DNA of 64,000 nt from Haliotis rubra (lineage: Eukaryota), in the NCBI RefSeq assembly GCF_003918875.1, contig NW_025767016.1, forward strand, positions 124,001-188,000. The letters are read 5' to 3'. The notes beneath the pieces were generated by a model. The model was not told the DNA's origin and ran no database searches. It saw nothing but the letters and a program-made list of their open reading frames with translations. A program made the translations under genes and the position numbers. How positions within the stretch are numbered: position 1 is the stretch's first letter; each line of letters begins with the position of its first letter. This document shows, piece by piece, positions 6,019 through 57,097 of the stretch.

Positions 6019-7417
6019 TCAGGCCATGTTCACATTGTCTTGCTTCTCAGGCGCCGTAATGTTTGTGGATGAAGTAAACACTGGCCTTGACTTGCTTCTG
6101 ATGATGACGAGGACTATCTTGGCAATTAGGGCTAACACGGCTAGCACTATGAGTACAATGGTGAAGATGGAATTTCCACGAGCAGCGTCATAGTTTTTGT
6201 CTAGACTGCCAGACAGAGCCCATATGACGACGCAATAGGGAGTGATGGTGTACCGGCTGTATTTGTCGAATAGGAAGAGGTCGGTGAGGACGAAGAGAAG
6301 CAAAGCGGTGGTGATAAAGCCGAGAGAGATTGAGGAAGCAGTGCTCTGGTCAATAGGAGGGTTAGCTCTGTAGGCAATCACAAAGCCCATGTTGAGGAAG
6401 GTAGCAGTGGTGGTCCACGCCGCATACATACCAAGCCCGTTGTGGACAAATACACGCATCAACGTATCTTCAATCTTCAGATTCAGTTTAGCAAGAACCT
6501 CCATGTTATCATTCAATGTTTTGTAGGAGATATACAAGCAGATGTACAGGGTGAACGCAATGGCGAACAGGAAGCTGAAGGACAGTTCGATGAGTTGGCG
6601 GTCAAAAAGAAGGAGCCAGCTGATGTTGAGGAACATGTTCAGGATGTACATTCCGAAGAAGGCCGGAGTAAGAAGAATGGGGTTGAGGTATAGGGGTCCT
6701 TCTTGGGTCTTCCTGCAAATACGGACCAAGGAGTAGATGATCCAGGCGGCCTGCCACGCATAGATCAGGCCCCAGATGCTGAAGGTCCAGCCGGCGGGGG
6801 TGATCTCCACGTAGAATGCGTCCGAGATGTCCCCGGTGGAATTCAGGAAGATACCTACGACAAACACAATGTGAAATGTAATACCACAGTTTAATTAATC
6901 ACTGTGGTATTACATTTCGAACAAAATCACATTACATTACGTAAAAGGGTTATTATGACGTATTTTTAAAGTTTGTGGTGCTGTATTCTAAAGGTAGGCA
7001 AACACAATGTGAAATACAATTACATTAGTTATTCAATAGTCACAGAAGCGGACATAGTGTTACCAATGTTACCCTCGTCGAATCATTGTAAGTATAAAAT
7101 CGTAAATAACGTTTAATCAAAAGATAAAAAAACAACACTCTTAACAAATTTTCAAATGCATATATTTCATATGCAAGTGCCTAAAATTCAAAACTGTAAC
7201 CACAAAAGACAGTAAGAACTTTCAACAGTCCAACTCGAACTGGCCATTACCGTCTTCGATCTGTCACAAACCCGGCATGCCTTGCGCCCAAGCTCGCCCC
7301 TGACTTACCTAAGCTGGTATCTGCCGCCAATCCGTTGAAGATGGCGGTGAGTATGAAGGCGAGCAGAGCCCCCACATTGAGGGCCTGCAACAACATTGGC
7401 GGGGGCGACTTCATCAT
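6019..7417 (-). CDS. TspO/MBR-like multi-pass membrane protein, paralogue 1 (314 aa; least derived motifs)
   Basis: Coding exons 7417-7309 (MMKSPPPMLL...DTSL, donor G|GTAAGT) and 6854-6019 (acceptor TCGTAG|GT); 945 nt in frame. Motifs EITPAGWTFSIWGLIY, LNISW, YAAWTTTATFLN; about 8 hydrophobic segments. Confidence 0.9.
6873..6918. repeat. perfect 18-bp inverted repeat (hairpin) in intron of paralogue 1
   Basis: GAAATGTAATACCACAGT / ACTGTGGTATTACATTTC with a 10-nt loop. Confidence 0.9.
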
Positions 7418-7489
7418 GAGCGATCGCAACCAAACCTGAAACCAAACACCTACAGGTTATTAATTGACTTAGCGAATGATTTGCGTTAA

Positions 7490-11790: not shown

Positions 11791-11821
11791 ATCCTCAATA
11801 TATGTATATAGATGTGGGCAA

Positions 11822-14558: not shown

Positions 14559-14592
<34 letters not shown>

Positions 14593-19621: not shown

Positions 19622-20642
19622 TGTAGGAGACAACATACAGATGAAGGTCAGCAACACTGTACAGATGAAGGTCAGCAACAGGTTCAGGAGACAACATACA
19701 GATGAAGGTCAGCAACAGTGTGTAGGAGACAACATACAGATGAAGGTCAGCAACAGTGTGTAGGAGACAACATACAGATGAAGGTCAGCAACAGTGTGTA
19801 GGAGACAACATACAGATGAAGGTCAGCAACAGTGTGTAGGAGACAACATACAGATGAAGGTCAGCAACAGTGTGTAGGAGACAACATACAGATGAAGGTC
19901 AGCAACAGTGTGTAGGAGACAACATACAGATGAAGGTCAGCAACAGTGTGTAGGAGACAACATACAGATGAAGGTCAGCAACAGTGTGTAGGAGACAACA
20001 TACAGATGAAGGTCAGCAACAGTGTGTAGGAGACAACATACAGATGAAGGTCAGCAACAGTGTGCAGGAGACAACATACAGATGAAGGTCAGCAACAGTG
20101 TGCAGGAGACAACATACAGATGAAGGTCAGCAACAGTGTGTAGGAGACAACATACAGATGAAGGTCAGCAACAGTGTGTAGGAGACAACATACAGATGAA
20201 GGTCAGCAACAGTGTGTAGGAGACAACATACAGATGAAGGTCAGCAACAGTGTGTAGGAGACAACATACAGATGAAGGTCAGCAACAGTGTGTAGGAGAC
20301 AACATACAGATGAAGGTCAGCAACAGTGTGTAGGAGACAACATACAGATGAAGGTCAGCAACAGTGTGTAGGAGACAACATACAGATGAAGGTCAGCAAC
20401 AGTGTGTGCAGGAGACAACATACAGATGAAGGTCAGCAACAGTGTGCAGGAGACAACATACAGATGAAGGTCAGCAACAGTGTGCAGGAGACAACATACA
20501 GATGAAGGTCAGCAACAGTGTGCAGGAGACAACATACAGATGAAGGTCAGCAACAGTGTGCAGGAGACAACATACAGATGAAGGTCAGCAACAGTGTGTA
20601 GGAGACAACATACAGATGAAGGTCAGCAACAGTGTGCAGGAG
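19622..20642. repeat. 38-bp minisatellite (TGTAGGAGACAACATACAGATGAAGGTCAGCAACAGTG)n, about 27 copies
   Basis: Near-perfect tandem array inside the last exon of the EnSpm gene. Confidence 0.95.
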
Positions 20643-22815
20643 GCAATGCTGACACTCATGTTTTCCTACTACGCTTGGGATCTAAGTTATCCCAAACGTG
20701 TTCGACTACTTAGACTACTCCAATCTTATGTTCTTGGAGACAGTGCACCTTTTTTCAAGGGATCAAACTACCAGAAGTTTATGAAAGAATTGGAGGATAG
20801 TTTAAGTCAGTAAACACTTTCCAGTGACAATTACCAGTACCAACCAGACATGAACAATATAAAGTCCAGTTTTTATTGTGTTTACAGTATTTTGCAAATA
20901 TTGAAATGATTAAAATAATTCAGTTTACTGTGATGTTCATTTCATTTCAGTGCATTTTGTTTGCAAGGAAAATGTCCTGCACAGAAAAGATACATAATGG
21001 GTTAAGTTAATGTCTTGCTAAAGACCATAGGGTTCTGCATCATTGTTTGGGTAGATCTCATAATTTTGTAAATATTTTTCTTAAAACGTTTTAAAGAAAG
21101 ATTGATTGCCGTTTCTAACTTTGATGCGGGTTGGACCTAATCTCAATATGCTGTTTTTATTGTTTGAATTAGAATTTATTTTACCAAAACCATTTGGATT
21201 GTTTCTGCATTCTCCAAAAAAGTTTAGCTTTCCCCTATTCATTGCTATGTGTGTTTTATAGTACTTGATGAAATACTTCTGACCTTTTTAAAATTAAAAC
21301 TACGGCAAGAGATTTGGAAAGTTTGTGCTTGTATTTTGAACATCAATCATTGTTTTCTAGGAAGGCTTCTTTGAGTTCTTTATTTGTGATTTTATCAAAG
21401 GTGTTAACCAAATCAAATTAATTATGGGTACTGTATACACTCAGTGATTTCTTTAAACACTGGGCATGCATATACAGCCTGTAACATTTCACTGTTTTTC
21501 CATAACCTATATATCAAGTTTCGTAAAACTATAAATAAAATTGGTTTCTATGAACTTAATGCTCTCGCATTTTCAGGTGATAATCAGGATTATTTCGGTA
21601 CAACTATGTACTGATATGCTAAACACAATCCTAAACGCGTACCTATTCTGTTTTTTTACATGTTAAGGTAGCTAAACATGTTTAAGCATCTAAACATGTT
21701 TAGATGCTAAACTCATTTCTTAACATGTTTAGGTAACTAAACATGTAAAGGGAGTGTACACAATATCACATATTCGGTGTTTTTTTCTTCCCGAATAATG
21801 CGACCCCTTAAACGGTCAATATTGTTTCATTAAGTAAAAGATATATACATTGTTCACTGTCTGATTTTCTGACAAGATTTATAGTGATCCCCTGATTTAT
21901 CCTGGGTATTTAAGCTGAGCTTAAGGTGATGGTAAAATACGGATCAGCTTACTTATACAGCGACATGTATACACGTGTGTGTGGCACCATTGCCAGTATT
22001 GATTGCAACCCGCGTCGTACAGCTGTACCTGTACTGAATGCAGCGTCAAGCAAACACATAAACATATAGCCCAGATTGTAAATAGACTCTGCTTGTAGCA
22101 GAGATTTCTTATGAAGGTGTAAAGGGCTTTGTCGTTTCTATTTACGCCAGTTTTGTGCGCACAGAATCCAACCGTGGTGAATACCCCAACAGTCAAACAG
22201 TCTTATCCCCTTAATTGCGGAATTTAGGTCGGGTAATAACTCTTACCATCCAATGAAATTTACTATTAATCGATAACAACTTCTATGATACACTATTATG
22301 GCGACGGTTTGGGCAGGAGGGTGGGGATTTCTACCGAAACGTGGCTGTAATAGGGTATTAAATAAGTTGCTGTGTCTACTTTCTCTTCCGTCAACTTCCA
22401 TGAAATAAGTATCAAAGAATTTAGCCTTTGATAAACATTTTGAAGTTAGAAGGACACGAATACGTGACACTTTTATATAGACAACACCTTCTTTTATTCT
22501 TTATCACGATGTTTCAGAGCTACTTCTTGCTCGCGGCATCATCGGGTGAATGCTGCATGTATACTTGTTTCATAGCCTGACATGATAGACCAGGAAGTTG
22601 GATGCAGGTTGAAAGAGAACACACTGTTTTACCTCTGATAACGCGTAAGATGACAATCCTTTGTTCTGGGATGATGGTAAGTTGAGGAATCTGACTTAAG
22701 TACCTACGTCAACAGCTGAGGTATTTTGACTAACGGTTAATGTCAAAATATGAAATCAACATACCACAAAATGCAGTTCTTGAGAAAATGTGCAACTAGT
22801 GCATCAGTATCATTA

Positions 22816-24835: not shown

Positions 24836-24838
<3 letters not shown>

Positions 24839-29410: not shown

Positions 29411-29692
29411 TTGACAACGACCGATACCCTCTCCATGACAAGTGTAATAGTTGACAACGACCGATACCCTCTCCATGACAAGTGTAATAGTTGACAACGA
29501 CCGATACCCTCTCCATGACAAGTGTAATAGTTGACAACGACCGATACCCTCTCTATAACAAGTGTAATAGTTGACAGTGACCGATACCCTCTCTATGACA
29601 AGTGTAATAGTTGACAACGACCGATACCTCTCTCTATAATAAGTTGACAGTGACCGATACCCTCTCTATAACAAGTTTGACAATGGCCGATA
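29411..29692. repeat. 40-bp minisatellite, about 7 copies, overlapping the 3' end of paralogue 2
   Basis: Unit TTGACAACGACCGATACCCTCTCCATGACAAGTGTAATAG starting at 29411, 29451, 29491, 29531, 29571 and 29611. Confidence 0.92.
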
Positions 29693-32600
29693 CGAAATGT
29701 ATGATTAATTTCAAGCATGGTCACGTTTTCCTTTGTGCTGTCGGTCTCTCGAGTGTGTCGGAAATACACGAGTACAAGTTTGACCACAAATGCGATGACG
29801 GACACGACAAGCAACACAACGGTGAATGTAGAGTTAACTGCCCCTGGTTGCCAGTTCTGGGCAATGCTACCAGAGAGCGCCACTATCAACACAAGGTATG
29901 GTGTGACGGTGTAGCGGGAATATTTGTCCAGGAACGTCCAGTCAGAGATAGAAAACAACACAAGCTCACCAGCAAGTATGCCAAGTGAAATAGTTGAGCT
30001 CGTTCTAGGTGTGATGGTAAAGTCTCTTTCATAGGCGAGAGCTGCTGCTAGGTTTAACAATGTGGCAATGGTGCACCACGTTGCATACGTGGCCAGGCCA
30101 TTCTGAACGAACACTCGCACCAGCCAGACATCTACCGTCCTGCCTTGTTCGACGAGGGTGGGTTCGTGATAGGCCATGTCGCGGTAGGACAGACCCAGGC
30201 AGATGTACGTGGACAGGTATGTGAGCAGCAGGAAGACCATGGACAACCATAGGTACTCCCGGTCAAACAGGAAGCTCCATCCCAGGACCACGCCCCAGTT
30301 GAGAGCGGACGTCAGGAACAACAACGGACTCAGCAAGGTCGGACTGACGTACACCGGGCCATTTGGGGCTTTCCTGATAAAAATAAAACTTTGGTTTAAT
30401 TCGAACAGAACTGAGCAGAAGCTGCAAACATCTTACAATATTTGATTGTTATTTTGTTGATTGATAGTTGTGAATAAGCTCGCATGTTACTTCCATGGTT
30501 GAGTGAATGAGAGAGGGAAACAAACAATCATGAGACAAGTTTACAAATTGATCCCTTATTATAACATATTTAACATAGACGCCGTGTCAGACAGTGGTAT
30601 TTATTGCCAAAAAGTTTTCCTGAACATCGATGGTTGGTGAATTAAATTTAACCACATGTAAATTTGAAATGCATTGTGCGATCCTATTGTGAAGGAGTAC
30701 TGCTTGTCTGAATAGCTGGGCAAGCCTTCCCTGAACATACTTGCTAACACAAAGCCGTGATTTTGCACACAAGTTGCACAGTTCAAAGTGGTTTTTATCA
30801 ACGAATTTGAGTGAGTGAGCTGGGTTTTACGCAGCTTTTAGCAATATTCCAGCAATATCGCGGCGGGGGACACCAGAAATGGGCTTAACATATTGCACCC
30901 ATGTGGGAAATCGAACCCGGGTTTTCGGCGTGACGAGCGAACGCTTAAACTGCCCCAGGGATTTGAAGATATAGGGCTCTATAGCAATCGAAATAACGCC
31001 CAGGTGATGTATTGCAACCCATCACCAGGCGGTGTGAAGCACATAAGTCATCACTTATGCAATACATGGTCAAAGCACTGCCCACCAGCATTTCGTTATG
31101 AATGTTGTTATTTTTTATGGTATCTAGTCTGTACCTAATGTACGTGAGAGCGACGTACGAGGAGATTTCCGACTGCACATAGGCCATCGCTAAGTGTTGA
31201 TTGGATACACATAAAAAACACCGAATTCTATCAGCTTACACAGACAGCTAATCTGTATTTAACAACTCACATCCGTGAACGGTTTTGTTATATACTGGCC
31301 CATTGTGTTGATTTCCTGTATTGTCAACCTAAAACCGTGGGTTAATTATCCATTGATCCTATGCGGGCATTAACCAATATCTCAATTCAGTCATGCACGT
31401 ATCAGGATATCATCTGTTTCCAAGAGCCCCTCTATTAACACAGGGTAGCACGCCAGTCGGGTTCAACTAAGGCAGCTTTATTTCAGTTCTACTACGGAGT
31501 CAGTTAAATGTGTCCAAAATTATGTCAATCTCATTAAAATCAGCTAGTTATAACCAGCGCTAAACAACGATCCGAGGACATCCCATTACGAGGCTCATCA
31601 GAACGACCTTTCATCCGACCAATTAGAACGTCGCTTCTCTTTATCCGAAAGTGACGGTTGGAATGTGTTTACTAAGCATGCAAACTCGGAAGGAATAACA
31701 TTGGAGAATCTAAACGTCAATTGGAGGCTGTACGACAGGTTCTGCCATATTATACTATCCGTCGCACAACTGAAAATCAAGAGAAGTCACTTTTCCAAAG
31801 CCTTTGAGGAGTGATGAAACATCTTGGCCATCTAGAATTCAAGAATTTTTGGGGGGTCAGAATTTCAAATTTTACAAATTTTCGATACTTTGGTAAAGTT
31901 ATATTCTTAAACGTAATGTTCAATAGAAGTCGTCAGTTTGAAAGATGATTTCGAAATGCTTGATGAAGCCGCTTTCTGATTGGTTGATGTCGACGTCTTG
32001 ATCGTCATGTCGTTCTTGAGTCAAAATTCTCAAAAGTCGTTCAGACAAGACTTGTCATGGGAAATCCTTTGATGTTTGCTTTGCGGTAGCGGCAACTAAG
32101 ATTTGAGATCAAAACGATAGAATATAGCTAGGGCGGATCTGGATCAGCGGATGGGATGACGTACCTGCAGATGTTGATGATGCCGTACAGCATCCACAGA
32201 GCTTGCCACACGAAGATGACACCCCAGATACTGAACGTCGGACTGGCGGGGGTGATCTCTATGGCATACTTGTCAGATATGTCTTTGACCTCGTTAATGA
32301 TAATTTCTGTAATGGAACATCGTCTAAGATTATTAATATTGTCTTTTATGAATGAACAGTGGGTGCAATCCTGCTCTCTGGAAGAATAAGTAGTCTGGGG
32401 CGGTGCTGTAGCAGGGTCATCAAGTAAGAGAGTCACACAGAAGGCCCGGCATCGATTCCCCACATGTGGGAAGCCCATTTCTGGTACCCCTCCCCATTAC
32501 TGACCACAACTGAACTCACTTTCCCAGAAACATCTAATGTGGCTCGGTGTCAAACACAGACAAACATTCCCCTATAGCAAACCTTAGGTCGAGGAGAATT

Positions 32601-32882: not shown

Positions 32883-33895
32883 TCAGATAGTGTATGCATT
32901 CACACTTCAGAGAGTAGGGATTCACATATGTTCAGATAGTGTATGCATTAACACTCAGAGGGTAGGACTTCACATGTGCATTCATTTAGAATATGCATTA
33001 ATTACACAATGTCATTTAGAAAGTGGTCAAATGTAACATATGTTATATTTGGGATTACACTTTCTTAGTAAAGTACAGATTCTAGTACGTTTTGGGTTGA
33101 GTCCCATCCGGGATTCGAACCCACACCCTCAGAGTCAGGCACCAATCGCCAACACACAAAGCTAGCGGCACTAACCCGCTCAGCCACCAGAGGGATACAC
33201 AAAGTCCTCAGTCTAGACTACCAGTTGTCCGATTTCCATTTTTGTGGAAGTCGCGGTAGGTGAGCGGGTTAGGCGGATGGGACTCAACCCCCCAAAATAC
33301 TAGAATCTGTACTTTACTAAGAAAATGTAATCCCAAATATAAGACTCAGACAGGTGAGATTCACATGAGTGTTTACTTTAAGTTAGTTTAATGCATTAAC
33401 ACTCAGACAGGTGGCATTCGCATGTGTGTTCGGTAAGTGCATGCATTAACACTGAGAGAGGTGAGATTCACGTGTGTTCGGATAGTGCATGCATTAACGC
33501 TCCGACAGGTGGGATTCGCATGTGGGTTCCTTCAGTATATACATTAACACTTAGACAGGTGATATTCAAATGTGTTTTTCTTTAGGATTGCATTTAGGAT
33601 AGGATATGCATGTCCGTCATTTCCTTGTAAGTGTGTTCTTTATAAAAGTAGGTACTTTATATGCATTGACGCTCAGACATTGTGTGCACGTAGCACCTAC
33701 ACAGGTGGACTTCCACAACGTGATTTAGGCGCTGTTAACCTGGACAGAATGGGGTGTTTACTTACTATAGGAACCGCCCACTAGTTGTGGCATCCGTCCA
33801 AGGTAGATAGTCAACAAGTTGACAATGAACATTGCCCAGTTGACTAGCATGCTAATAACGAGGAAAGGAGAGTGTCCCCGCGTCATGGTAACCAT
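29593..33895 (-). CDS. TspO/MBR-like multi-pass membrane protein, paralogue 2 (350 aa, three coding exons)
   Basis: Exons 33895-33766 (MVTMTRGHSPFLVISMLVNWAMFIV..., donor A|GTAAGT; missing from the ORF track), 32306-32165 (EITPASPTFSIWGVIF) and 30373-29593; 1053 nt in frame. Confidence 0.85.
30809..30945 (-). mobile_element. tRNA-derived SINE, 5'-truncated, in intron of paralogue 2
   Basis: B box GGTTCGATTTCC, GCTGGAATATTGCT tail motif, (ACTC)n. Confidence 0.8.
32848..32880. repeat. (TG)n microsatellite
   Basis: Direct observation; a degenerate GCATTAACACTCAGACAGGTG-based repeat follows to about 33575. Confidence 0.85.
33014..33342. mobile_element. head-to-head pair of a second tRNA-derived SINE family, forming an inverted repeat
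   Basis: Minus copy has GGTGGCTGAGCGGGTTAG and GGGTTCGAATCCCGG; plus copy (about 33255-33342) is internally deleted; homologue at 58211-58370. Confidence 0.7.
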
Positions 33896-38703: not shown

Positions 38704-41182
38704 TTACGCTGTTCCTCCGTCCTGCTTTGATTCCGTCGTTGGAACGAACACTTTCTGTCTCTGTGCGCCCCGGAAGTGACGCCACAGCATCACGACCACC
38801 TTCACCACTAAACACAACGCCGCCATAGCCAGTAGTACAGCTGTGAAGATGGAATTCCTCTTCGCAGGATTCCAGTTCTTAGTGATACTTCCGGAAAGGG
38901 CGATAACCACGACGATGTACTCGCTAAAAATATACCTCGTATGTCTGTCCAGTATTGTCAAGTCTGAGATAAAGAAGACAAGAAGTTCAAAGGTCAGGAT
39001 GCCTAATGCAATGGTGCTTGAAGTACTCTGATCAAACTTGGGATGGTCGCCGTAAGTCAGCGCAGTGGCAACGTTGAGGAGAGTAGCGATGGTGCACCAG
39101 GCCCCGTAAAACGCCAGTCCGTTTTGGACAAGTGCTCGGATGAGCCATATCTCCTTTTTTCGATCTTGTTTGATGAGTGTCTCGGTGTGTTCAGCAAGTG
39201 CTTTGCATGAGAGACCGATGAGTGTATATATAGAAATAGCGGTGAGTGCCAGGAACACAAAAGCTGCCCACACGAGCTCCCAGCACCATAGAAAGGTCCA
39301 GGAAATGACAATAAACCAGTTGAGGATGGAGACACTGAAGAAGGTCGCTGTGAGGAGGGCGGGACTATTGTAGACGTACCCATCGGGGGCACGGCGGCAG
39401 ATGTTGATGTGGGCGTAGATGGTCCAGATGGCCTGCCATACGTAGATGGCACCCCAGATGCTGAAGGTGGAACCAGAGGGTGTGATCTCGAGTGCAAATT
39501 TGTCCGAGATATTTCCAATCGTATTGGGGTAGAGTTCTGAAATATACAGTGAGAGCAGGAAGTCAGTTTTCTGATTTAATGTTGACCACTCATTCTGTTA
39601 CAACAATGCATTTAATAAACAGCTTATGTAGCATTGGAGTGAGTGAGTGAGTTAAAATCTTCACACCGGCAATATTTCAGCCATATAATGACGAGAACAA
39701 AGTTAGTATGTATGATAAATATAAACATTAGCAACGTACCACAGAATTCAAGTCTTAATACTAATCACTGCCAAATCTAAAAATGCAACTCGATAGGACA
39801 TATATTACCATGAAAACACGGGCTATGGTCCACCAAAAAACAAAGCTAGGCCCCCTTACTGCGGTTCATGGGGACTTACGATACTTCAGCTTCCTGCATG
39901 AATCCCCAGCGGATTTAAACCATCTCTTCAGCAACTGGTAGTTGTAAACAATGCTAGCCAGAATTAAAACAATACAATTGAAGCAATAAAATTCCGGTTG
40001 TCTGCAGTGTACTATAATACCATTATGCAATCATCAGGGGAGTAATCCTTTTACCATACTTCAACTCCATGAAATAGCAATATACTATAATATAATAATA
40101 GTTTTTGATTATATCAACCTCATTTAAAACACATCCATTCAAAAACTACTGATCAATCCTATCTGTTTTAAAACTCTGAAATTAAATGAGAGTTGATTGT
40201 GTTAAAGAGATCCTTTAAATTTGAAACTTTGTAATAAATATCCCTTGTGAGAGAAAATTCTGCACGCTCAAGCAAAACATGGTTGACCGTGATTGTCTCA
40301 TGACAAGGGATAAAAAATGGAGGATCTTCCCCTTTCAATAAATATTCATTTGCATATCTGCTGTGGCCAATACGACATCGTCGTAATATGGCCTCATCAA
40401 ATCTGGACTGACAGCCCAAGTATGCAGCATTGGAAACGTCCTCCTACACTCTTTGTGACATGGTCTGGACAATAAGATCCAACTTATTACTACTGTTTAT
40501 TAGCCTGTGGTGTGCAAGAGGTGTAACATTTTAATTGGCTGTGTGGAGTAGCACACCTGTGCCGTACCAGGATTTTCTGTTTGGTTGGATTCCGAGACAC
40601 CGATCCATGGGTTAACATGTATAGCAGTATACAGGCGCGATGGGTTTTGATACAAGGTTGGGTGTAACTTCCGACTTCCCTTTCGCATGAAGCGGACACG
40701 TTTATATAATGGATATGATAAGTACATACTGTTCGAATTCAACGGTACAAGTATATGTATAGTGATACGGACGAGTAGGAAGAAATGGTATACATGTATA
40801 CCCTTAAACCTCCTATTAAAGGTATGGTGACGACAGAGAACTCCCACGATAAGTAATTTCAAACGCACATGCTTTATACAAACTGTTAATATCTGTTGGA
40901 TGTTGCAAGTTCGATACTACTGGAGTCATGACAAACAGTAAATAGAGTTGTATGTTGTAAGTTGCAGGTGATAGATAGATAGAGGTGGACAGACAGCCGC
41001 TCTGTTTGAACCACATACAATCTTGCCATGTTGTGAAATGAAAATAAATATGTGACCAACGCACTTGTCTCGATACCCAGAAACTCTCTGGTGTTGCCCA
41101 GTAGACTGAGGAACTGGTTGGCGATGAACGCCACCAGGTTGCCTACCACCAAGGCAATGAGGAAAGGCGAGTGTCCGGCCAT
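38704..41182 (-). CDS. TspO/MBR-like multi-pass membrane protein, paralogue 3 (316 aa)
   Basis: Exons 41182-41065 (MAGHSPFLIALVVGNL...GIET, donor A|GTGCGT) and 39536-38704 (acceptor TTTCAG|AA); 951 nt in frame. The ORF track shows only the last 189 aa. Confidence 0.9.
39637..40420 (-). mobile_element. 3' fragment of an I/Nimb-like LINE with 3' UTR and (ACTC)n tail, in intron of paralogue 3
   Basis: ORF 40168-40419 RCRIGHSRY...LLKGEDPP...CHETITVNHVLLE is a decayed CCHC C-terminus; tail GCTGAAATATTGCC...ACTCACTCACTC; second UTR fragment at about 36790-37000. Confidence 0.75.
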
Positions 41183-41611: not shown

Positions 41612-44600
41612 TAGACTGTAGATGATCCACCTGATGTATGACAACTAGATCCACCTGATGTATGACAACTAGACTGTAGACGATCAACCTGATGTATGAC
41701 AACTAGACTGTAGACGATCCACCTGATGTATGACAACTAGACTGTAGACGATCAACCTGATGTATGACAACTAGACTGTAGACGATCCACCTGATGTATG
41801 ACAACTAGACTGTAGACGATCCACCTGATGTATGACAACTAGACTGTAGACGATCCACCTGATGTATGACAACTAGACTGTAGACGATCAACCTGATGTA
41901 TGACAACTAGACTGTAGACGATCCACCTGATGTATGACAACTAGACTGTAGACGATCCACCTGATGTACCTGATGTATGACAACTAGACTGTAGACGATC
42001 AACCTGATGTATGACAACTAGACTGTAGACGATCCACCTGATGTATGACAACTAGACTGTAGACGATGTGATGTATGACAACTAGACTGTAGACGTTCAC
42101 CTGATGTATGACAACTAGACTGTAAACGATCCACCTGATGTATGACAACTAGACTGTAGACGATCACCTGATGTATGACAACTAGACTGTAGACGATCCA
42201 CCTGATGTATGACAACTAGACTGTAGACAGTCGATCCACCTGATGTATGACAACTAGACTGTAGACGATCCACCTGATGTATGACAACTAGACTGTAGAC
42301 GATCCACCTGATGTATGACAACTAGACTGTAGACGATCCACCTGTTGTATGACAACTAGACTGTAGACGATCCACCTGGTGTATGACAACTAAACTGTAG
42401 ACTGTAGACGATCCACCTGATGTATGACAACTAGACTGTAGACGATCCACCTGATGTATGACAACTAGACTGTAGACGATCCACCTGATGTATGACAACT
42501 AGACTGTAGACGATCCACCTGATGTATGACAACTAGACTGTAGACGATCCACCTGATGTATGACAACTAGACTGTAGACGATCCACCTGATGTATGACAA
42601 CTAGATCCACCTGATGTACTGACTGTAGAAGATCAACCTGATGTATGACAACTAGACTGTAGACGATCCAACCTGATGTATGACAACTAGACTGTAGACG
42701 ATCCACCTGATGTATGACAACTAGACTGTAGACGATCCACCTGATGTATGACAACTAGACTGTAGACGATCCACCTGATGTATGACAACTAGACTGTAGA
42801 CGATCCACCTGATGTATGACAACTAGACTGTAGACGATCCACCTGATGTATGACAACTAGACTGTAGACGATCCACCTGATGTATGACAACTAGACTGTA
42901 GACGATCCACCTGATGTATGACAACTAGACTGTAGACGATCCATCTGATGTATGACAACTAGACTGTAGACGTTCCACCTGATGTATGACAACTAGACTG
43001 TAGACGATCCACCTGGTGTATGACAACTAAACTGTAGACACAAACATTCAAACAATGGAAGATCCACCTGATGTATGACAACTAGACTGTAGACGGTCCA
43101 CCTGATGTATGACAACTAGACTGTAGACGATCCACCTGATGTATGACAACTAGACTGTAGACGATCCACCTGATGTATGACAACTAGACTGTAGACGTTC
43201 ACCTGGTGTATGACAACTAGACTGTAGGCAGATCCACCTGATGTATGACAACTAGATCCACCTGATGTATGACAACTAGACTGTAGACGATCAACCTGAT
43301 GTATGACAACTAGACTGTAGACGATCCACCTGATGTATGACAACTAGACTGTAGACGATCAACCTGATGTATGACAACTAGACTGTAGACGATCCACCTG
43401 ATGTATGACAACTAGACTGTAGACGATCCACCTGATGTATGACAACTAGACTGTAGACGTTCACCTGATGTATGACAACTAGACTGTAGACGATCCACCT
43501 GATGTATGACAACTAGACTGTAGACGATCCACCTGATGTATGACAACTAGACTGTAGACGATCCACCTGATGTATGACAACTAGACTGTAGACGATCCAT
43601 CTGATGTATGCCAACTAGACTGTAGACGATCCACCTGTTGTATGACAACTAGACTGTAGACGATCCACCTGGTGTATGACAACTAGACTGTAGACACAAA
43701 CATTCAAACAATGGAAGATCCACCTGATGTATGACAACTAGACTGTAGACGATCCACCTGATGTATGACAACTAGACTGTAGACGATCCACCTGATGTAT
43801 GACAACTAGACTGTAGACGATCCACCTGATGTATGACAACTAGACTGTAGACGATCCACCTGATGTATGACAACTAGACTGTAGACGATCCATCTGATGT
43901 ATGCCAACTAGACTGTAGACGATCCACCTGATGTATGACAATTAGAGTGGAGACGATCCACCTGATGTATGACAACTAGACTGTAGACGATCCACCTGTT
44001 GTATGACAACTAGACTGTAGACGATCCACCTGGTGTATGACAACTAAACTGTAGACACAAACATTCAAACAATGGAAGATCCACCTGATGTATGACAACT
44101 AGACTGTAGACGATCCACCTGATGTATGACAACTAGACTGTAGACGATCAACCTGATGTATGACAACTAGACTGTAGACGATCCACCTGATGTATGACAA
44201 CTAGACTGTAGACGTTCACCTGGTGTATGACAACTAGACTGTAGACGATCCACCTGATGTATGACAACTAGACTGTAGACGATCCACCTGATGTATGACA
44301 ACTAGACTGTAGACGATCCACCTGATGTATGACAACTAGACTGTAGACGATCAACCTGATGTATGACAACTAGACTGTAGACGATCCACCTGATGTATGA
44401 CAACTAGACTGTGGACGTTCACCTGATGTATGACAACTAGACTGTAGACGATCCACCTGATGTATGACAACTAGACTGTAGACGTTCCACCTGATGTATG
44501 ACAACTAGACTGTAGACGATCCACCTGGTGTATGACAACTAGACTGTAGACGATCCACCTGATGTATGACAACTAGACTGTAGACGATCCACCTGATGTA

Positions 44601-45895
44601 TGACAACTAGACTGTAGACGATCCATCTGATGTATGCCAACTAGACTGTAGACGATCCACCTGTTGTATGACATCTAGACTGTAGACGATCCACCTGGTG
44701 TATGACAACTAAACTGTAGACACAAACATTCAAACAATGGAAGATCCACCTGATGTATGACAACTAGACTGTAGACGATCCACCTGATGTATGACAACTA
44801 GACTGTAGACGATCCACCTGATGTATGACAACTAGACTGTAGACGATCCACCTGATGTATGACAACTAGACTGTAGACGATCCACCTGATGTATGACAAC
44901 TAGACTGTAGACGATCCATCTGATGTATACCAACTAGACTGTAGACGATCCACCTGATGTATGACAACTAGACTGTAGACGATCCACCTGATGTATGACA
45001 ACTAGACTGTAGACGATCCACCTGATGTATGACAACTAGAGTGGAGACGATCCACCTGATGTATGACAACTAGACTGTAGACGTTCACCTGATGTATGAC
45101 AACTATACTGTAGACGATCTGTAGACGATCCACCTGATGTATGACAATTAGAGTGGAGACGATCCACCTGATGTATGACAACTAGACTGTAGACGATCCA
45201 CCTGATGTATGACAACTAGACTGTAGACGATCCACCTGATGTATGACAACTAGACTGTAGACGATCCACCTGATGTATGACAACTAAACTGTAGACGATC
45301 CACCTGGTGTATGACAACTAGACTGTAGACGATCCACCTGATGTATGACAACTAGACTGTAGACGATCCACCTGATGTATGACAACTAGACTGTAGACGA
45401 TCCACCTGATGTATGACAACTAGACTGTAGACGATCCACCTGATGTATGACAACTAGACTGTAGACGATCCACCTGATGTATGACAACTAGACTGTAGAC
45501 GATCCACCTGATGTATGACAACTAGACTGTAGACGATCCACCTGATGTGTATGACAACTAGACTGTAGACGATCCACCTGATGTATGACAACTAGACTGT
45601 AGACGATCCACCTGATGTATGACAACTAGACTGTAGACGATCCACCTGATGTATGATGTACAACTAGACTGTAGACGATCCACCTGATGTATGACAACTA
45701 GACTGTAGACGATCCACCTGGTGTATGACAACTAGACTGTAGACGATCCACCTGGTGTATGACAACTAGACTGTAGACGATCCACCTGATGTATGACAAC
45801 TAGACTGTAGACGATCCACCTGGTGTATGACAACTAGACTGTAGACACAAACATTCAAACAATGGAAGATCCACCTGATGTATGACAACTAGACG
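41612..45895. repeat. 34-bp minisatellite (AACTAGACTGTAGACGATCCACCTGATGTATGAC)n, about 125 copies with higher-order variants
   Basis: Tandem array; variant with insert ACACAAACATTCAAACAATGGAA recurs at 43038, 43694, 44055, 44720 and 45845. Confidence 0.95.
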
Positions 45896-49443: not shown

Positions 49444-49606
49444 GAGTGAGTGAGTTCAGTTTTACGCAGCTTTCAGCGATATTCTAGCAATATCACGGCT
49501 GGTGACACCAGAAATGGGCTTCACACATTGTACCCATGTGGGGATTCAAACCGGGTCTTCGGCGTGGCGAGCCAACGCTTTCTCCACTAGGCTACACCAA
49601 CGCCCT
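49444..49606 (-). mobile_element. full-length tRNA-derived SINE with (ACTC)n tail
   Basis: A box TAGCCTAGTGG, B box GGTTTGAATCC, TSD GTGCATAA (49435-49442, 49608-49615). Confidence 0.85.
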
Positions 49607-49702
49607 TGTGCATAAAGAACTTTACGCACACATAGCTTCACATTTATATTAACACATTCTCTACTGTAGACTGTTCTAACGGCCGGAGCCAGCATCCCTC
49701 TG

Positions 49703-49862
49703 TCACAGTCTAATACTCTGCTTCTCAGTGGTGGTCGGAAGTTCATCTCTGTTTCTGTCCGAGTCCCGACAATGTCGCCAAAACATGAGAACCATCTTGG
49801 TGATAAAGCATAAGATCGACACTCCCAATAGAACCGCTGTGAAAATAGAGTTTGTCTTTCCC
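49703..49862 (-). pseudogene. orphan 3' fragment of a cluster paralogue (last TM helix and tail)
   Basis: GKTNSIFTAVLLGVSILCFITKMVLMFWRHCRDSDRNRDELPTTTEKQSIRL*; homology ends abruptly at CCC 49860-49862, where sequence matching the non-coding flank at 54871 begins. Confidence 0.85.
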
Positions 49863-50576
49863 TGCGTCTTGCTATTGTACTGGATTGTTTTGAGAGTGAC
49901 AACAATTATGCCGTGTGGATGTGAAGTGAAACTTCCGATGTAGAATTCACTAATTAATAACATTATACAGGTTCAGTCAATTAAAGCATATTTTACAGAT
50001 AAATAATAAAAAAATAAAATATAATGATAAGGAGTCCTGAGACTTTCTTCATTTTCAGAAACTGTGGAAATCTAGACTTGCCACACATTCTAGACTTGCA
50101 TGGGCTACCTTGGGTATATAGTGCACCCTGGTTATGATGTCCCTGGTAATAATGTCACCCTGGATATAATGCCACGTATTCTCCTGGACAACCTGTGGCA
50201 TTATAACCAGGGTATACTGTATTTATTTCCGAGTCTGTACAACAGACTACATGTTAACCTTTCACGTTTGGACAGTGCAGAACTTGAGTTGATGTATTGC
50301 TGGTCCTTTGACAGCTATATCCTTCTCAATGATGTAATCATAAAAGAAATTCTAACAAATGTAAACATTTTATTTATATCTTTTTACAAAATAATGTGTA
50401 TATTTCAAAGACTAAACATGTACCCTTTACCCATGTACGAAACATGGTAATCACATTGCTTGGGACGTGTCACCAGCACGTAACACTGTACATAAAGAAC
50501 GTTACACGCACAAAAGTGCATATTGACATATTGTCATCACTATAAATAGTTCGTTCAGCTGGAACCAGCATCTATT

Positions 50577-52324
50577 TTACATTCTAATGCTTTGCTTCTC
50601 GGTGATGGTCGGAAGTATAATTTTGTTTCTGTCCGAGTCCCGACAATGTCGCCAAAACATGAGAACCATCTTGGTGATAAAGCATAAGATCGACACTCCC
50701 AATAAAACCGCTGTGAAAATAGAGTTGGTCTTTCCCGGGTTCCAGTTCTTGACCATACTTCCGGAGAGTGCGACGATGACAACGATATAGGGACTAAACG
50801 TATAGCGTGAGTATTTGTCCATAATTGTCCAGTCAGAGAGAGCGAAGACTGTCAGCTCAAGGGACAGGATGCTGAGAGAGATGGTGGAGGAAGTACTCTG
50901 GTCAAATTGTGGATGGGAGGTGTAAGTAAGAGCCATTGCAAGGTTGAGGAGTGTGGCAATAGTGCACCATGCACCATAGAAGGCAAGACCATTCTGCACC
51001 AGCATGCGCACCAACCAGATGTCCACTTTACGTCCTTGTTTCACCAGAGTGTCGTGGTGTTGTGCCAGTGCCCTGTAGGAGAGTCCTATGCAGATGTAGA
51101 TGGTGATGAAGACGATGGCGAGGAACACGAAGGCCACCCACACGTGGCCCCATCCCCACACGAAGGTCCAGGTGATGACGCACATCCAGTTGAGGATGGA
51201 GACACCAAAAAAGGTCGCAGTGAGGAGGGTGGGGCTGTTGTAGACGTAGCCATCGGGGGTACGTCGACAGATGTTGACGACAGCGTAGATGGCCCAGACA
51301 GCCTGCCATATGTAGATGGCGCCCCAGAGGCTGAAGGTGGCTGAAGAGGGCGTGATCTCGAGGTACCGTTGATCCGAGGCATCTTCCATTGATTGGCCGA
51401 AAATATCTGAAAGTTACAGTCACTGAGTTATTTTATGTGTCTTTATCTTCCAACAATATACATGTACTTTCAGCCTTCTACATAATGTGAAAACACGTTC
51501 GCCATTTCCTGGGTCTGTTTATAGCAATGGGGGTTTTAACAGAAGGAAGATATAGAACAGATACAGAATTATGTGTCCAGAAAATACTGTAAAATCTCAA
51601 CTACACCTGTTGTTATTTCCCACTGCTTAGTCACATTATGAGGAAACCATCGATGTGAAGCGAGGTATTTATTCTATCTGTACCACTGAGAGGTTAAGGA
51701 CCACAATCTTGAGTCCTGCACGTTATTTAAGTCTGTCATGAACTTACATCGGATGGTCCTTAACGTATTTTATGTGGTCTATGTCATAGGTGTAATGCCA
51801 TCTGGCCAAGGGGGTTTGATACAAAGGTAGTTACAACCCTACAAGTGTCGTGTTAAACGACATTGATGACATTAATCAAGCATGTTATCTTGCTGATTCA
51901 CAGCTTCAGCTGTCATAACCATGAACCCATGAAGATCCGGGTTAGAATTGACCTTCCGTAACCCATGCTTGTCGTACAAGAGGCGACTAACTGGATCGGG
52001 TGGTCAGGCTCGCTGACTTGGTTGACACATGTCATCGGTTCCCAATTGCGCAGATCGATGCTCATCCTGTTGATCACTGGGTTGTCTGGTTCAGACTGGA
52101 TTATGTTCAGTCCGCCGCCATTTAGCTGGAATATTGCTGAGTGCGTCGTAAAACTAAACTAACTCACTCACTCACTCACTCCAAAGAATGAGGTACTTAC
52201 TTATATCAATGCCCAACACCTCTCTGACTTGGGCCATATTCAGCGCACCAAATAGCTGATTGATGATGAAGAACACAAAGTTGCCAATGGCGAGAGCCAT
52301 AAGCAGAGGGGAGTGGAACGCCAT
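50577..52324 (-). CDS. TspO/MBR-like multi-pass membrane protein, paralogue 4 (317 aa)
   Basis: Exons 52324-52201 (MAFHSPLLMALAIGNFVFFIINQ...GIDI, donor A|GTAAGT) and 51406-50577 (acceptor TTTCAG|AT); 954 nt in frame. Confidence 0.9.
51925..52181 (+). mobile_element. SINE-like element with GCTGGAATATTGCT/(ACTC)n tail
   Basis: Related decayed copies at about 4340-4525 (+), 5785-5990 (-) and 54510-54663 (+). Confidence 0.7.
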
Positions 52325-53320
52325 CTTGTTTCAGCTAATCAGCGGTAAGCCAGACAACTTGAGCTGTTGAACAAAAAGACACTTTTATGAACACATGTAG
52401 CAGTGTTATTGTGATTGTCATTTGAATCAATGAGGTTATAGTTGTATCGCCATTAGATTTACCTGTACAGCAGCACTGAGACTGGGGATATGAGCCTGTC
52501 ACGAAGCATTGCGCCAATGTAATGATTGAGCCGTGCCATGTGCCAGCCAAGTGTTACGTTCAGAGTCATGATGTCATATTCAGAAACCCGTTCCTTATGG
52601 CTGTATACAGTTTTGTTTCAGCGTTTCAGTAAGTTTTATCATTGTGCCAATATCAGTTTGTGCCGGAAACTGATAGAAGCCGTTTAGTATTGTACGTCTA
52701 TTACTTGTTTCTAGAACGTATAAATGACCAAAACAAAAGCACGACAAATTAAAAAAAACCCAACTATACGTCGAGGCATAGCCAGTTTAATTTCTTCATG
52801 TTTTCACACGACACTGGCGATTTCTCCGGGAAAAAGGGATCACTCTGGGATATGGTATGCAGAGTGGTTGAACGTATCGCCACTTGACTGACGTGTATGA
52901 CCATCAGTATTGTTTATGTGTTTCTCATCTCATCCTCGACAAGCAATAGAACGAGCGGACGAAAAAACGACAACCTGAACACATTAAAAATGTTTCTCAT
53001 CGATTTCGTAAGTTATTTCAACGAATTGCTATGGTTTTGATCTCATGGTAATTATCTGTAAAACATTATAATGTAAATCAAGTCGCTTTGGAAACAATGC
53101 TTTTAAGATTTAGATAAAGAAAGATCAGGCTGACCCAGCATTTTATGAATGTGCACGGTAGTTTTCAGCACATCAGGGCATACGATTCCACAGCGTCTGG
53201 GAAAACCGAGATGAGAAAGCTGTTTGTATTTGACGTTGGTATTGGAATTCAGGGATGGTGGGAAATAGGAAACAGAAAAATTACGTACAGTCTAACACTG
53301 GATCACTACTGTACTGGGAT

Positions 53321-53470
53321 CACCTGACTGTACAGATGAGACACAGGTACACCTGACTGTACAGATGAGACACAGGTACACCTGACTGTACAGATGACAC
53401 ACAGGTACATCTGACTGTACAGATACGGCACAGATACACCCGACAGTACACGGAGAAGCCAGATACACTT
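53321..53470. repeat. 29-bp minisatellite, about 5 copies
   Basis: Unit CACCTGACTGTACAGATGAGACACAGGTA, decaying rightwards. Confidence 0.85.
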
Positions 53471-53677
53471 ATCCAATATAAGCTTATAGGGAACTTGCTA
53501 CTGTTTGTCCTGACGTAGTCGTAATTATAACAGTCTTTATTTTACATTAAACACGGTTATATTTGAAACATTTTGACATCAACATATTGGGAACGTAAAA
53601 CAAACAATCAGTATCGAAGTTTTGTTCACTATAATTTTTCACCATTACACACTGGCCAAACATGTCGCTGAACTTAC

Positions 53678-53841
53678 CTTACGCGTCTACCGTGTGGACT
53701 CGTTGTGGAAACGTCTCGAGACAACTAAGCGTAACCGCTGTTGCCTTCCTATAAATATCGGGTAAATCATGCGACAACTCGTTTGTAATGAAACATTCTC
53801 CACATGGTGAAACACGTGACGCACATATATAACAACACGTG
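53678..53841 (-). promoter_or_regulatory. predicted promoter and non-coding first exon of paralogue 4
   Basis: Donor AAG|GTAAGT at 53678, TATTTATA at 53757-53750, CACATGGTGAAACACGTGAC at 53801-53820, second CACGTG at 53836; acceptor AACAG| at 52364. Confidence 0.55.
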
Positions 53842-54870
53842 TCTTGAAAACACTCCCCACAGAAGGCAGGCTTGTCGTTATACAAAGGGACATAACTGCT
53901 GTAGAAGCTTGAATCAACGGCGATCCAATGAGAGGGTAAATAAACCTGCCGCCTTCGCAGAGGTCCGTGAAGCGGAACATCGCCTAAATCAGTATATGTT
54001 TCGTATGGAGAGTTTCTAAAACTGGATTAATCGACATTGTAAATTTTGACACACCAAAATGGATAACAGTTTTAGAAAGACGATATATTCCACAATATGC
54101 CACAAAGCTGTATTTATGTTATAAAGGGTCTGATGTGTTTATAAAATATGAACTCACACCACACACATGTTCCTGTTGCGCTTCTAATTACGTACTTCAG
54201 TAAATGTGTGATATTGAGTAAGGTTTTCTTCGTAGCTCCTCCTGCAATGCATCTTCTTATAAGAACTGTTATGTTTGTATTATCAAGATGCGCAATGTCA
54301 CAGTCTCGAAACTAAGATATTCTGAGCTAGGAATCCACATCAGTATTTCACGTTGCTACTGTACCCCTGTAGGTGTTCATCCTACCGCCATTATTGCAAT
54401 GTAGCACCGCATGGTACAATTGTTGCTTTGTGCATAGCGTTTAAGGAAATATTGTTTTTAGTTTTAAGGAGATTTCGAATTTAAAGACCTATGATAATTG
54501 TGAAGTTCTTGACACATGTCATCGAATACCAATTGCGTAGATCGATGATCATGCTGTTGATCACTGGATTGTCTTGTTCAGACTCAATTATTAACAGACC
54601 GCTGTCATAATGTTGAAATATTGCTGAGTGCGGCGTTTAACAACAAACAAACAAACAAACAAAGTTGTCGGGTGCTGACTGAGCCACAGTGCTGTTCATG
54701 TTTTATGCGATATTGTCAACTTATGATGGTATTATTTGAAAATCGAACACAAGAATAAACTGTAAGGTTTCGTTTCCTTCGGTCTTCAGTTTTAATATAA
54801 TGTAGATTTCGCATTATACATTTATATGACTTGTCAAACACAGTAACAACGCATTCTGTTTAATAGCATA

Positions 54871-56527
54871 CCCTGCGTCTTGCTATTGTATTGGATTGTT
54901 TTGAGAGTGACAACAATTATGCCGTGTGGATGTGAAGTGGAACTTCCGATGTAGAATTCACTAATTAATAACATTATACAGGTTCAGTCAATTAAAGCAT
55001 TGACGGCTCCCGCTACTCTGAGTTTGGTGTGACGGATCTTCCTGTAACTGTGGTCACCGTGTTAACTAGACCAACAACTAGTCTCTGAAATGAACATATT
55101 TTACAGATAAAACAGCTCATAATCAAAAAAATAAAATATAATGATAAGGAGTCCTGAGACTTTCTTCATTTTCAGAAACTGTGGAAACCTAGACTTGCCA
55201 CACATTCTAGACTTGCATGGGCTACTTGGGTATATAGTGCACCCTGGTTATGATGTCCCTGGTTATAATGTCACCCTGGATATAATGCCACGTATTCTCC
55301 TGGACAAACTGTGGCATTATAACCAGGGTATACTGTATTTATTTCCGAGTCTGTACAACAGACTACATGTTAACCTTTCACGTTTGGCCAGTGCAGAACT
55401 TGAGTTGATGTATTGCTGGTCCTTTGACAGCTATATCCTTCTCAATGATGTAATCATAAAAGTAATTCTAACAAATGTAAACATTTTATTTATATCTTTT
55501 TACAAAATAATGTGTATATTTCAAAGACTAAACATGTACCCTTTACCCATGTACGAAACATGGTAATCACATTGCTTGGGACGTGTCACCAGCACGTAAC
55601 ACTGTACATAAAGAACGTTACACGCACAAAAGTGCATATTGACATATTGTCATCACTATAAATAGTTCGTTCAGCTGGAACCAGCATCTATTTTACATTC
55701 TAATGCTTTGCTTCTCGGTGATGGTCGGAAGTATAATTTTGTTTCTGTCCGAGTCCCGACAATGTCGCCAAAACATGAGAACCATCTTGGTGATAAAGCA
55801 TAAGATCGACACTCCCAATAAAACCGCTGTGAAAATAGAGTTGGTCTTTCCCGGGTTCCAGTTCTTGACAATACTTCCGGAGAGTGCGACGATGACAACG
55901 ATATAGGGACTAAACGTATAGCGTGAGTATTTGTCCATAATTGTCCAGTCAGAGAGAGCGAAGACTGTCAGCTCAAGGGACAGGATGCTGAGAGAGATGG
56001 TGGAGGAAGTACTCTGGTCAAATTGTGGATGGGAGGTGTAAGTAAGAGCCATTGCAAGGTTGAGGAGTGTGGCAATAGTGCACCATGCACCATAGAAGGC
56101 AAGACCATTCTGCACCAGCATGCGCACCAACCAGATGTCCACTTTACGTCCTTGTTTCACCAGAGTGTCGTGGTGTTGTGCCAGTGCCCTGTAGGAGAGT
56201 CCTATGCAGATGTAGATGGTGATGAAGACGATGGCGAGGAACACGAAGGCCACCCACACGTGGCCCCATCCCCACACGAAGGTCCAGGTGATGACGCACA
56301 TCCAGTTGAGGATGGAGACACCAAAAAAGGTCGCAGTGAGGAGGGTGGGGCTGTTGTAGACGTAGCCATCGGGGGTACGTCGACAGATGTTGACGAGGGC
56401 GTAGATGGCCCAGACAGCCTGCCATATGTAGATGGCGCCCCAGATACTGAAGGTGGCTGAAGAGGGCGTGATCTCGATGTACCGTTGATCCGAGGCATCG
56501 CCCACAGACTGGCCGAAAATATCTGAA
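54871..56527. repeat. segmental duplicate of 49860-51411 (last exon plus 3' flank)
   Basis: Near-identical sequence including non-coding flank, apart from an indel of about 95 bp near 55000-55095 and a smaller indel. Confidence 0.92.
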
Positions 56528-57097
56528 AGTAGCAGGAAAGTTAACATCATGCATGTGGGAAAATATATTGTAATTTATCTTGTGGATAGACTAAATAATT
56601 TTGAAATTCAGGTTCGGCTTCTTTGTCTATAATATACTCATTGTAAAGTGCAAAAAGATTCCACAATATTATGCCAATAATTCATTTTAACAGACTTGAC
56701 AATATTCTTCATCTGTCAAAATATGTGTATTTGATTCACAATTAGAACCCAATTTCAATGTTATAGGATACCATGATGCATGTGCAATGTAAGATAACTA
56801 TATAATACGCACGCGTGGAACATGGGACATATGGCCTTGTAAACAATAAACTGGGCTTGACTGACTGAATGGAAAATGACTTTTTGGATGAAATATACGT
56901 CGCTGAGTCAGCACAGCCAATTCATTGTCGACTGATACACACTGGTGCATTCCTTCAATCATATGACACTTACTAGTATCAATGCCCAGCATTTTTCTGA
57001 ATTCCTCCATGTTCAATGCACCCATTATCTGATTGATGATGAAGAACGTCAAGTTGCCTGTGGCGAGGACGATGAGTAGTGGGGAGTGGGACGCCAT
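55693..57097 (-). CDS. TspO/MBR-like multi-pass membrane protein, paralogue 5 (317 aa)
   Basis: Exons 57097-56974 (MASHSPLLIVLATGNLTFFIINQ...GIDT, donor A|GTAAGT) and 56522-55693; 954 nt in frame. Confidence 0.9.

Follow-up and report, generated by a model that had tools for sequence, protein, structure and literature searches.

Long TspO-like membrane proteins encoded by a tandem gene cluster in the abalone Haliotis rubra

The TspO/MBR family (PF03073), to which the bacterial proteins BcTSPO (4RYI/4RYM) and RsTSPO (8E7W) and the mitochondrial 18-kDa TSPO belong, is built around a bundle of five helices, and despite the use of TSPO as a drug and imaging target its function is still disputed. 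Here we describe a cluster of related genes in Haliotis rubra, located in a 64,000-nucleotide stretch of contig NW_025767016.1 (positions 124,001–188,000, assembly GCF_003918875.1), referred to below as the window and numbered from its first base. The five genes of the cluster, A to E, encode membrane proteins of about 315 residues representing a distinct eight-helix variant of the TspO superfamily, widespread and unstudied in the indexed literature. Like TspO/MBR proteins, members of this long family contain a five-helix bundle, superposable over 147–152 residues, and display motifs of similar pattern, namely P-x-G-W-x-F..W...Y ahead of helix 2, N..W within helix 3 and Y..W...A..LN within helix 5. 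Unlike them, they are about twice the size, and carry three extra C-terminal helices with invariant residues of their own and a longer first loop containing short helices. Further differences are that the copies in the window fall below any Pfam score, and that the cholesterol-recognition CRAC motif that follows helix 5 in animal TSPO (L/V-x(1-5)-Y-x(1-5)-R/K) is limited to 25 of 84 long members and, within the window, to genes B and C. The assignment of these genes to an ancient 'long' branch of the TspO/MBR superfamily, together with the evolutionary history outlined below, is considered highly probable.

Relation to the TspO/MBR superfamily

The fold was examined in two AlphaFold models, one for the H. 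cracherodii orthologue of genes D and E and another for the H. asinina orthologue of gene A (pLDDT 93.2 and 92.7, pTM 0.89 each). Both exhibit eight long helices, including the three additional C-terminal ones anticipated by the original prediction, as well as two short helices in the first loop. An exhaustive structural comparison (three VIA searches) placed bacterial TSPO crystal structures at the top among natural proteins for both models. RsTSPO (8e7w_A) was aligned over 150 of 157 residues with a Z of 10.7 and an rmsd of 3.6, and BcTSPO gave Z values of 10.5–11.8 overall, with 10.5–11.7 for 4ryi_A (147 of 151 residues; 11.4 for the second model) and 11.8 for 4rym (151 of 154 residues). 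Altogether 147–152 of 151–157 TSPO residues, or 96–98% of the chain, were aligned at 13–20% identity, the matched region corresponding to model residues ~4–207, and in both Foldseek lists BcTSPO was the entry of highest probability (0.82 and 0.87). Weighing against this assignment, the Foldseek E-values are weak (~2), and Z values of 10–12, being below 13, lie within the range where helical bundles can match by arrangement alone. Since a Z of this size is possible between unrelated helical bundles, the case for the TspO fold rests on fold and profile evidence together.

Within this superposition the helix encoded by exon 1 (helix 1) falls on TSPO helix 1, and the loop preceding helix 2 is longer and accommodates the two short helices. 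An extra N-terminal helix arrangement, which had been proposed for these proteins, was therefore not recovered, as there is no additional transmembrane helix and only loop 1 is extended. The true addition comprises helices 6–8 (residues ~208–300), which match only generic helical hairpins. The models support a view in which helices 1–5 form the TspO five-helix bundle with the three further helices packed against it, so that proteins of 314–350 residues with eight long helices stand apart from the 18-kDa five-helix TSPO.

At the level of sequence, the connection to PF03073 (profile length 145, curated gathering threshold 24 bits, matches counted at E up to 1) is established through relatives. 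The profile is matched by 16 of 84 aligned family members, and the threshold is exceeded by four animal proteins (P0054, 30.8 bits; P0009, 26.9; P0049, 26.5; P0005, 25.9) and by two long forms of Bacillota (L019 and L063, at 36.7 bits for Terribacillus and 33.3 bits for Fictibacillus). Matches above threshold extend from profile position 11 or 32 to position 144 of 145, the best animal match pairing residues 38–196 with positions 11–144. Bacterial members are labelled 'tryptophan-rich sensory protein' by the NCBI pipeline, and no NCBIfam model covers the bacterial long forms. Arguing against a closer affiliation, the large exons of all five window proteins have no PF03073 match even at E up to 1, nor does their closest full-length orthologue (P0001), and profile searches of PDB sequences with window proteins and family profiles returned no matches; direct Pfam, NCBIfam and PDB sequence searches with both likewise gave nothing significant. 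The link is thus provided by the Pfam matches of relatives and by the fold, and not by a sequence search with the window proteins themselves, and the suggestion that these proteins are TspO-like is supported at the superfamily and fold level rather than as strict Pfam membership. A language-model feature search also pointed to the fungal membrane family DUF1774 (PF08611) with a score of 0.87, below the 0.9 level and thus a lead only.

Full-length homology points to an ancient family that is widespread in prokaryotes and animals. Abalone queries identified relatives in molluscs, annelids, a brachiopod, a nemertean, hemichordates, echinoderms, amphioxus, lamprey, sharks, coelacanth and ray-finned fishes, all of them labelled uncharacterised. 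An absence from tetrapods suggested by these queries was overturned by a coelacanth query, which extended the family to lungfish, many amphibians, turtles, alligator, lizard, birds and Tasmanian devil. This query gave 716 matches at E ≤1e-10, and no placental mammal is found among the best 120 of the 716, which does not amount to proof of absence. The vertebrate orthologues (zebrafish si:ch211-161h7.5 and si:dkey-29d8.3, and unnamed LOC genes from sharks to Tasmanian devil) resemble the abalone proteins in length, in their invariant residues and in an identity of 37–45%; unlike abalone genes B–E they keep the ancestral W and N residues discussed below, and are present in one or two copies rather than five or six. 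In the indexed literature the names of the zebrafish members appear only in a gene table of PMC11589825, and no study of the family was found. Two to three copies share one contig or have adjacent locus tags in Littorina, Babylonia, Owenia, Asterias, Sinanodonta, Potamilus and Saccoglossus, among others, and tandem duplication therefore recurs.

Scanning prokaryotes (one genome per species) with the two most conserved peptide patterns revealed at least 214 confirmed loci in Bacteroidota, Chloroflexota, Bacillota, Myxococcota, Rhodobacterales, and Asgard and other archaea. Their reading frames of 234–300 residues share with the animal proteins the N-terminal motif ...N.LA....G..TG..SD.Y....PAG..FSIWG.IY, and tblastn matched query residues 6–312 in Cytophagales and 1–257 in Asgard archaea. 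When the animal and prokaryotic profiles were compared using hhalign, columns 24–307 were aligned with columns 15–266 at a probability of 99.9% (E 4.8e-34, 248 columns), a match including all eight helices. Consistent with this, an Atlas fold search superposed the predicted structures of bacterial clusters upon the abalone model with TM scores of 0.70/0.87 and 0.70/0.76 over 246–248 residues (rmsd 2.3–2.5). Prokaryotic long forms, such as those of Thermus (TT_RS10490), Paracoccus (CX676_RS20940), Phaeobacter (PGA1_RS18375), Terribacillus and Asgard archaea, thus resemble the abalone proteins in full-length homology, eight-helix plan and N-terminal motif, and differ from them in their shorter loops, in having no introns and a single copy per locus, and in an identity of 25–32%. 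These too are uncharacterised, and the expectation that relatives in fish, invertebrates and bacteria would be so is borne out by the database matches. A long TspO-like gene on Cereibacter sphaeroides plasmid c (L087:6935-7633) is annotated 'seryl-tRNA synthetase', which looks like a mis-annotation.

Organization and evolution of the abalone cluster

Gene copies were located by a tblastn comparison of the two exons of gene E with the window, and exact gene models were built from splice sites read in the sequence (Table 1). The region between 6019 and 57097 holds five full copies and a C-terminal fragment, each of them on the minus strand (E-values 2e-72 to 0), upholding the original prediction of five intact co-oriented paralogues and a fragment. 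Every reading frame is open and every intron is of the GT-AG type. The intron following helix 1 is in phase 1 in all five genes, as had been recognized from the outset, and gene B alone possesses a second intron, in phase 2, which was missed in the first reading. Protein identity is highest between D and E (94%), lower for C and E (63%) and B and E (~50%), and only 39–43% between A and the rest; the motifs initially quoted as TspO-like, TPAGWTFSIWGLIY, LNISW and YAAWTTTATFLN, are all located in gene A.

Table 1. Exons of the TspO-like genes and associated features in the window
Feature	Coordinates	Strand	Remarks
Gene A exon 1	7309..7417	-	ATG at 7417; helix 1; donor GTAAGT; ends in phase 1
Gene A exon 2	6019..6854	-	Helices 2–8 and stop; spliced ORF of 314 aa, intact
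Gene B exon 1	33766..33895	-	ATG at 33895; donor GTAAGT; phase 1
Gene B exon 2	32165..32306	-	Loop 1 and helix 2; followed by the extra phase-2 intron
Gene B exon 3	29593..30373	-	Last 31 codons from 40-bp minisatellite; gene B, 350 aa
Gene C exon 1	41065..41182	-	Donor GTGCGT; phase 1
Gene C exon 2	38704..39536	-	Gene C, 316 aa
Gene D exon 1	52201..52324	-	Contigs join 52201 directly to exon 2
Gene D exon 2	50577..51406	-	Inside 98%-identical block copied from gene E; gene D, 317 aa
Displaced original gene D tail	49513..49930	-	Last 76 codons (49930-49703) and 3' flank
Gene E exon 1	56974..57097	-	Contig piece ends exactly at donor 56974
Gene E exon 2	55693..56522	-	Gene E, 317 aa
TIR-domain ORF	62966..63991	-	At least 341 aa; TIR at residues 197–321

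In a phylogenetic tree genes B–E and the Haliotis proteins P0001–P0004 form a single clade (support 100/99), with gene A outside it. Only the B–E radiation is therefore Haliotis-specific, having arisen by tandem duplication, so that the notion of a lineage-specific expanded family stands for the expansion of B–E and fails for the family itself, which is ancient and widespread. Database searches gave Haliotis proteins as the best matches. The gene A protein is 96% identical to its H. asinina counterpart and 87% to that of H. rufescens, that of gene E is 92% identical to its H. cracherodii counterpart, and the C and E proteins share 91% and 93.5% identity, respectively, with their H. asinina orthologues. 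Gene order and orientation (E-D-C-B-A) are the same in H. asinina, where they are followed by an inverted sixth copy, F, beyond A. This paralogue (CM074535.1, L084:18473-20317; P0123, 337 aa) is 52% identical to A and lies 6.4 kb beyond it; it is not within the present window, and its counterpart would fall just outside. Codon comparison of the five genes with their H. asinina orthologues gave dN/dS ratios of 0.10 for A, 0.07 for B, 0.13 for both C and E, and 0.19 for D, with dS of 0.25–0.32; the low ratios at all five indicate that genes A–E are under purifying selection.

Rearrangement has left its mark on this otherwise conserved arrangement. Genes D and E share a block of ~1.6 kb that is 98% identical (49860–51414 versus 54871–56530), starting a few bases ahead of the exon-2 acceptor and extending past the stop codon, whereas their first exons are only 79% identical. 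Just downstream of this block lies the C-terminal fragment; from there into its 3' flank, 49858–49513 aligns with the H. asinina D orthologue across the end of that gene and its 3' flank (348 bp, 82%). Because the near-identical block starts at the exon-2 acceptor, the first exon is divergent, and a D-like tail remains downstream, gene D is a chimera combining its own exon 1 and intron with exon 2 of gene E, its own original tail being left behind. The copying of gene E exon 2 into gene D is recent. At the end of gene B, a 40-bp minisatellite (29411–29676) reaches into the coding sequence and replaces the last codon and stop, adding 31 repeat-encoded residues without counterpart in H. asinina, in which the reading frame ends one codon after ...NHTFR. 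Large minisatellite arrays (26096–29294, 41648–45846, 1–1840, 19660–20646, 24268–24740, 34159–34856 and 59556–60617) fill much of the intergenic space, with units of 33 bp (96 copies) and 34 bp (123 copies), and others of 21, 36–39, 38, 53, 58 and 44 bp. Long open reading frames at 26007–26426, 28364–28795 and 418–1068 were rejected as repeat artefacts.

Evidence for expression was sought in contigs of four public runs mapped to the region of genes D and E (51100–57097). Two contigs of 1210 and 1148 nt (X1 record 5 and X2 record 13), originating from two runs of one study, run from the end of gene D exon 1 straight into the opening base of exon 2, thus matching the predicted intron to the base, and a contig piece over gene E exon 1 (X1 record 7) stops exactly at its donor site. 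A DNA run of the same organism crosses the intron unbroken. That the runs containing spliced contigs are only guessed to be RNA weighs against this evidence, but the lack of the intron in these contigs argues for cDNA. Gene D is spliced and transcribed, and gene E probably so. In all four runs very high summed contig depth and many false joints were seen at 51900–52200, 54500–54700 and 54900–55300, corresponding to high-copy dispersed repeats that flank gene D exon 1 and lie downstream of gene E.

The TIR gene noted beside the cluster is real as an open reading frame (PF13676, E 1.3e-8; PF01582, E 5.6e-7). It is situated 5.9 kb upstream of gene E and near the end of the window, where it may be incomplete, and no evidence was found of a functional link between it and the TspO-like cluster.

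Putative ligand pocket and a possible role in light stress

Homology to TspO makes binding of a hydrophobic ring-shaped ligand the likeliest activity of these proteins. Their five-helix bundle would hold a tetrapyrrole, pigment, sterol or oxidised lipid, with the conserved Trp/Asn/Tyr motifs in loop 1 and in helices 3 and 5 lining the pocket, and the protein may buffer, move or degrade this ligand in defence against light-driven oxidative damage. Taken as a whole, the explanation of a long TspO branch devoted to hydrophobic-ligand handling in photo-oxidative defence is judged moderately probable, its component concerning the ligand and the photo-oxidative role being a tentative one. Within the family, the loop-1 Trp and the helix-3 N..W and helix-5 Y..W...A..LN motifs are either invariant or more than 90% conserved. 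Their spacing presumably fits the TSPO motif, and the helix-5 Ala is taken to be equivalent to human A147 and RsTSPO A139; this equivalence of pocket residues depends on motif spacing and Pfam profile coordinates, which counts against pressing it too far. Invariant residues are also found in helices 6–8 (L219, R242, Y243, N269).

Across the cluster these positions have fared differently. Gene A has kept all residues that are conserved in 90% or more of 84 relatives. In contrast to the family at large, where the loop-1 position is Trp in 90% of members and the helix-3 position is Asn in 92%, the former is occupied by P in B, S in C and A in both D and E, and the latter by V in all four; an aspartate at the end of helix 3 is also lost in C–E. 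The helix-5 motif is intact in all five genes. As these substitutions fall in TspO-like pocket motifs of genes that remain constrained, a change in ligand preference is more likely than decay for B–E, so that gene A would keep the ancestral pocket and B–E probably take a different ligand.

Several observations hint at a connection with light and oxidative stress. In Thermus thermophilus the long form on pTT27 (TT_RS10490) overlaps the RudS gene by 4 nt and lies 1.4 kb from fni-crtI; RudS genes are found in light-responsive operons, and this Thermus cluster is cited among them (PMC11417400). The long form of Paracoccus zhejiangensis pPZ02 (L085:1-7717) stands last in an operon whose other genes encode fasciclin, FAD-oxidoreductase, DUF1365, a CFA-synthase homologue, MFS and SDR proteins, divergent from an adjoining ECF sigma/anti-sigma pair, a layout similar to that of the singlet-oxygen-induced furan-fatty-acid operon RSP1091-1087 of Rhodobacter sphaeroides (PMC7380195). 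In Phaeobacter the long form follows a DNA-damage ligase pair. Zebrafish si:ch211-161h7.5 showed the strongest induction (log2 fold change +4.0) of a gene set including per2, cry5, cry-dash, ddb2 and soul5 (PMC11589825). Among TspO genes more generally, canonical tspO is induced by photo-oxidative stress in Rhodobacter capsulatus (PMC7074977), and a TspO-family gene, long or canonical, located beside a photolyase in Mycobacterium kansasii is upregulated 29-fold in light (PMC9861118).

A broader formulation would have long TspO-like proteins act as a cross-kingdom defence against photosensitiser and singlet-oxygen damage through the handling of tetrapyrrole-type membrane pigments. The animal distribution, a zebrafish gene moving together with photolyase and clock genes, and the Thermus and Paracoccus operons would all fit; the distribution, comprising fish, amphibians, reptiles, birds and a marsupial but no placental mammal among the matches listed, is the pattern known for photolyases. 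Even so, this generalization is unlikely, and a light-stress role of the long family is doubtful. Against it, the zebrafish contrast was between melatonin and control, not light and dark (PMC11589825), and the zebrafish genes do not appear in the supplements of the zebrafish light-response papers examined. When 97 neighbouring reading frames at ~50 prokaryotic loci were compared with Pfam, no family exceeded 4 of the 97, recurrences came from one genus, and no photolyase was present. Similarly, a tblastn search of 80 loci with genes of the Thermus and Paracoccus operons (RudS, fni, crtI, FAD-oxidoreductase, DUF1365, CFA synthase, SDR and ligase) gave at most one co-located match each, so that RudS, crtI, CFA synthase and DUF1365 each adjoin no more than one of the 80. 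Since these partners almost never recur, the light-stress context is anecdotal and not general. Within the window the D-box TTAYGTAA is not enriched (5 matches versus 8.3 expected). A perfect palindromic D-box-like site, TTACGTAA, at 6937–6944 in gene A intron 1, is one of three in the window, no more than expected by chance.

Alternative explanations and implications

Alternative functions need to be considered for the eight-helix unit. It may be that the bundle derives from TspO while the entire unit works as a transporter, a channel or a membrane enzyme (one acting on lipids, for instance), with no specific role in light response or tetrapyrrole binding. The three added helices and a mass of ~35 kDa, unlike the 18-kDa TSPO, would suit such a function, and the invariant residues of helices 6–8 listed above suggest that the extension is no passive anchor; MFS and ABC transporters are among the varied prokaryotic neighbours, and the Paracoccus member resides in a fatty-acid-modifying operon. 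On the other hand, no transporter or enzyme family was matched in Pfam, NCBIfam or the PDB, residues 208–300 resemble nothing beyond generic hairpins, and conservation is strongest in the motifs held in common with the TspO ligand pocket, making this explanation rather unlikely, though the strongest of the competitors. A more radical alternative views the TspO likeness as convergent, the proteins belonging to an unrelated multi-helix family with a similar five-helix arrangement and a few Trp-rich motifs. This would account for the missing Pfam match of the window copies, the blank PDB sequence searches, Foldseek E-values near 2, and designed helical bundles scoring nearly as high in VIA, but is contradicted by the six members that pass the curated PF03073 threshold over nearly the whole profile, by TSPO being the top natural match of two models with 96–98% of its chain aligned at 13–20% identity, and by the 'tryptophan-rich sensory protein' label already attached to bacterial members by the NCBI pipeline. 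On balance, convergence is very unlikely.

The history of the locus raises yet another scenario, in which only one or two copies matter and the extra paralogues are redundant or decaying within an unstable, minisatellite-rich region. Gene D has been overwritten by gene E with a dead tail fragment left behind, the stop codon of gene B has been replaced by a minisatellite, large minisatellites separate the genes, and transcript evidence covers D and E only. Contrary to what decay would predict, all five reading frames are intact with canonical splice sites, each gene has an H. asinina orthologue in the same order, dN/dS is 0.07–0.19 for every pair at a dS of ~0.25–0.3, and spliced D transcripts appear in two runs and E exon 1 in one. 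This scenario is the least probable of all, and the preferred reading of the cluster is still that of a long TspO branch with a ligand-handling function.

This assignment defines a second, larger TspO-derived family, extending from archaea and bacteria to most vertebrate groups, zebrafish, Xenopus and birds among them, and offers relatives amenable to genetics in which the role of the TspO bundle can be studied. Should the light-stress reading prove true, it would add a membrane component to the sunlight-defence gene set. For abalone, the cluster provides a natural experiment, with one ancestral-type copy beside four constrained copies in which two near-invariant residues have changed. Abalone graze on algae, and accumulate phototoxic chlorophyll breakdown products as well as bilin or porphyrin shell pigments. 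Under the cross-kingdom light-defence reading, if true, the expansion of B–E with its changed pocket would represent an adaptation to dietary tetrapyrroles in these animals.

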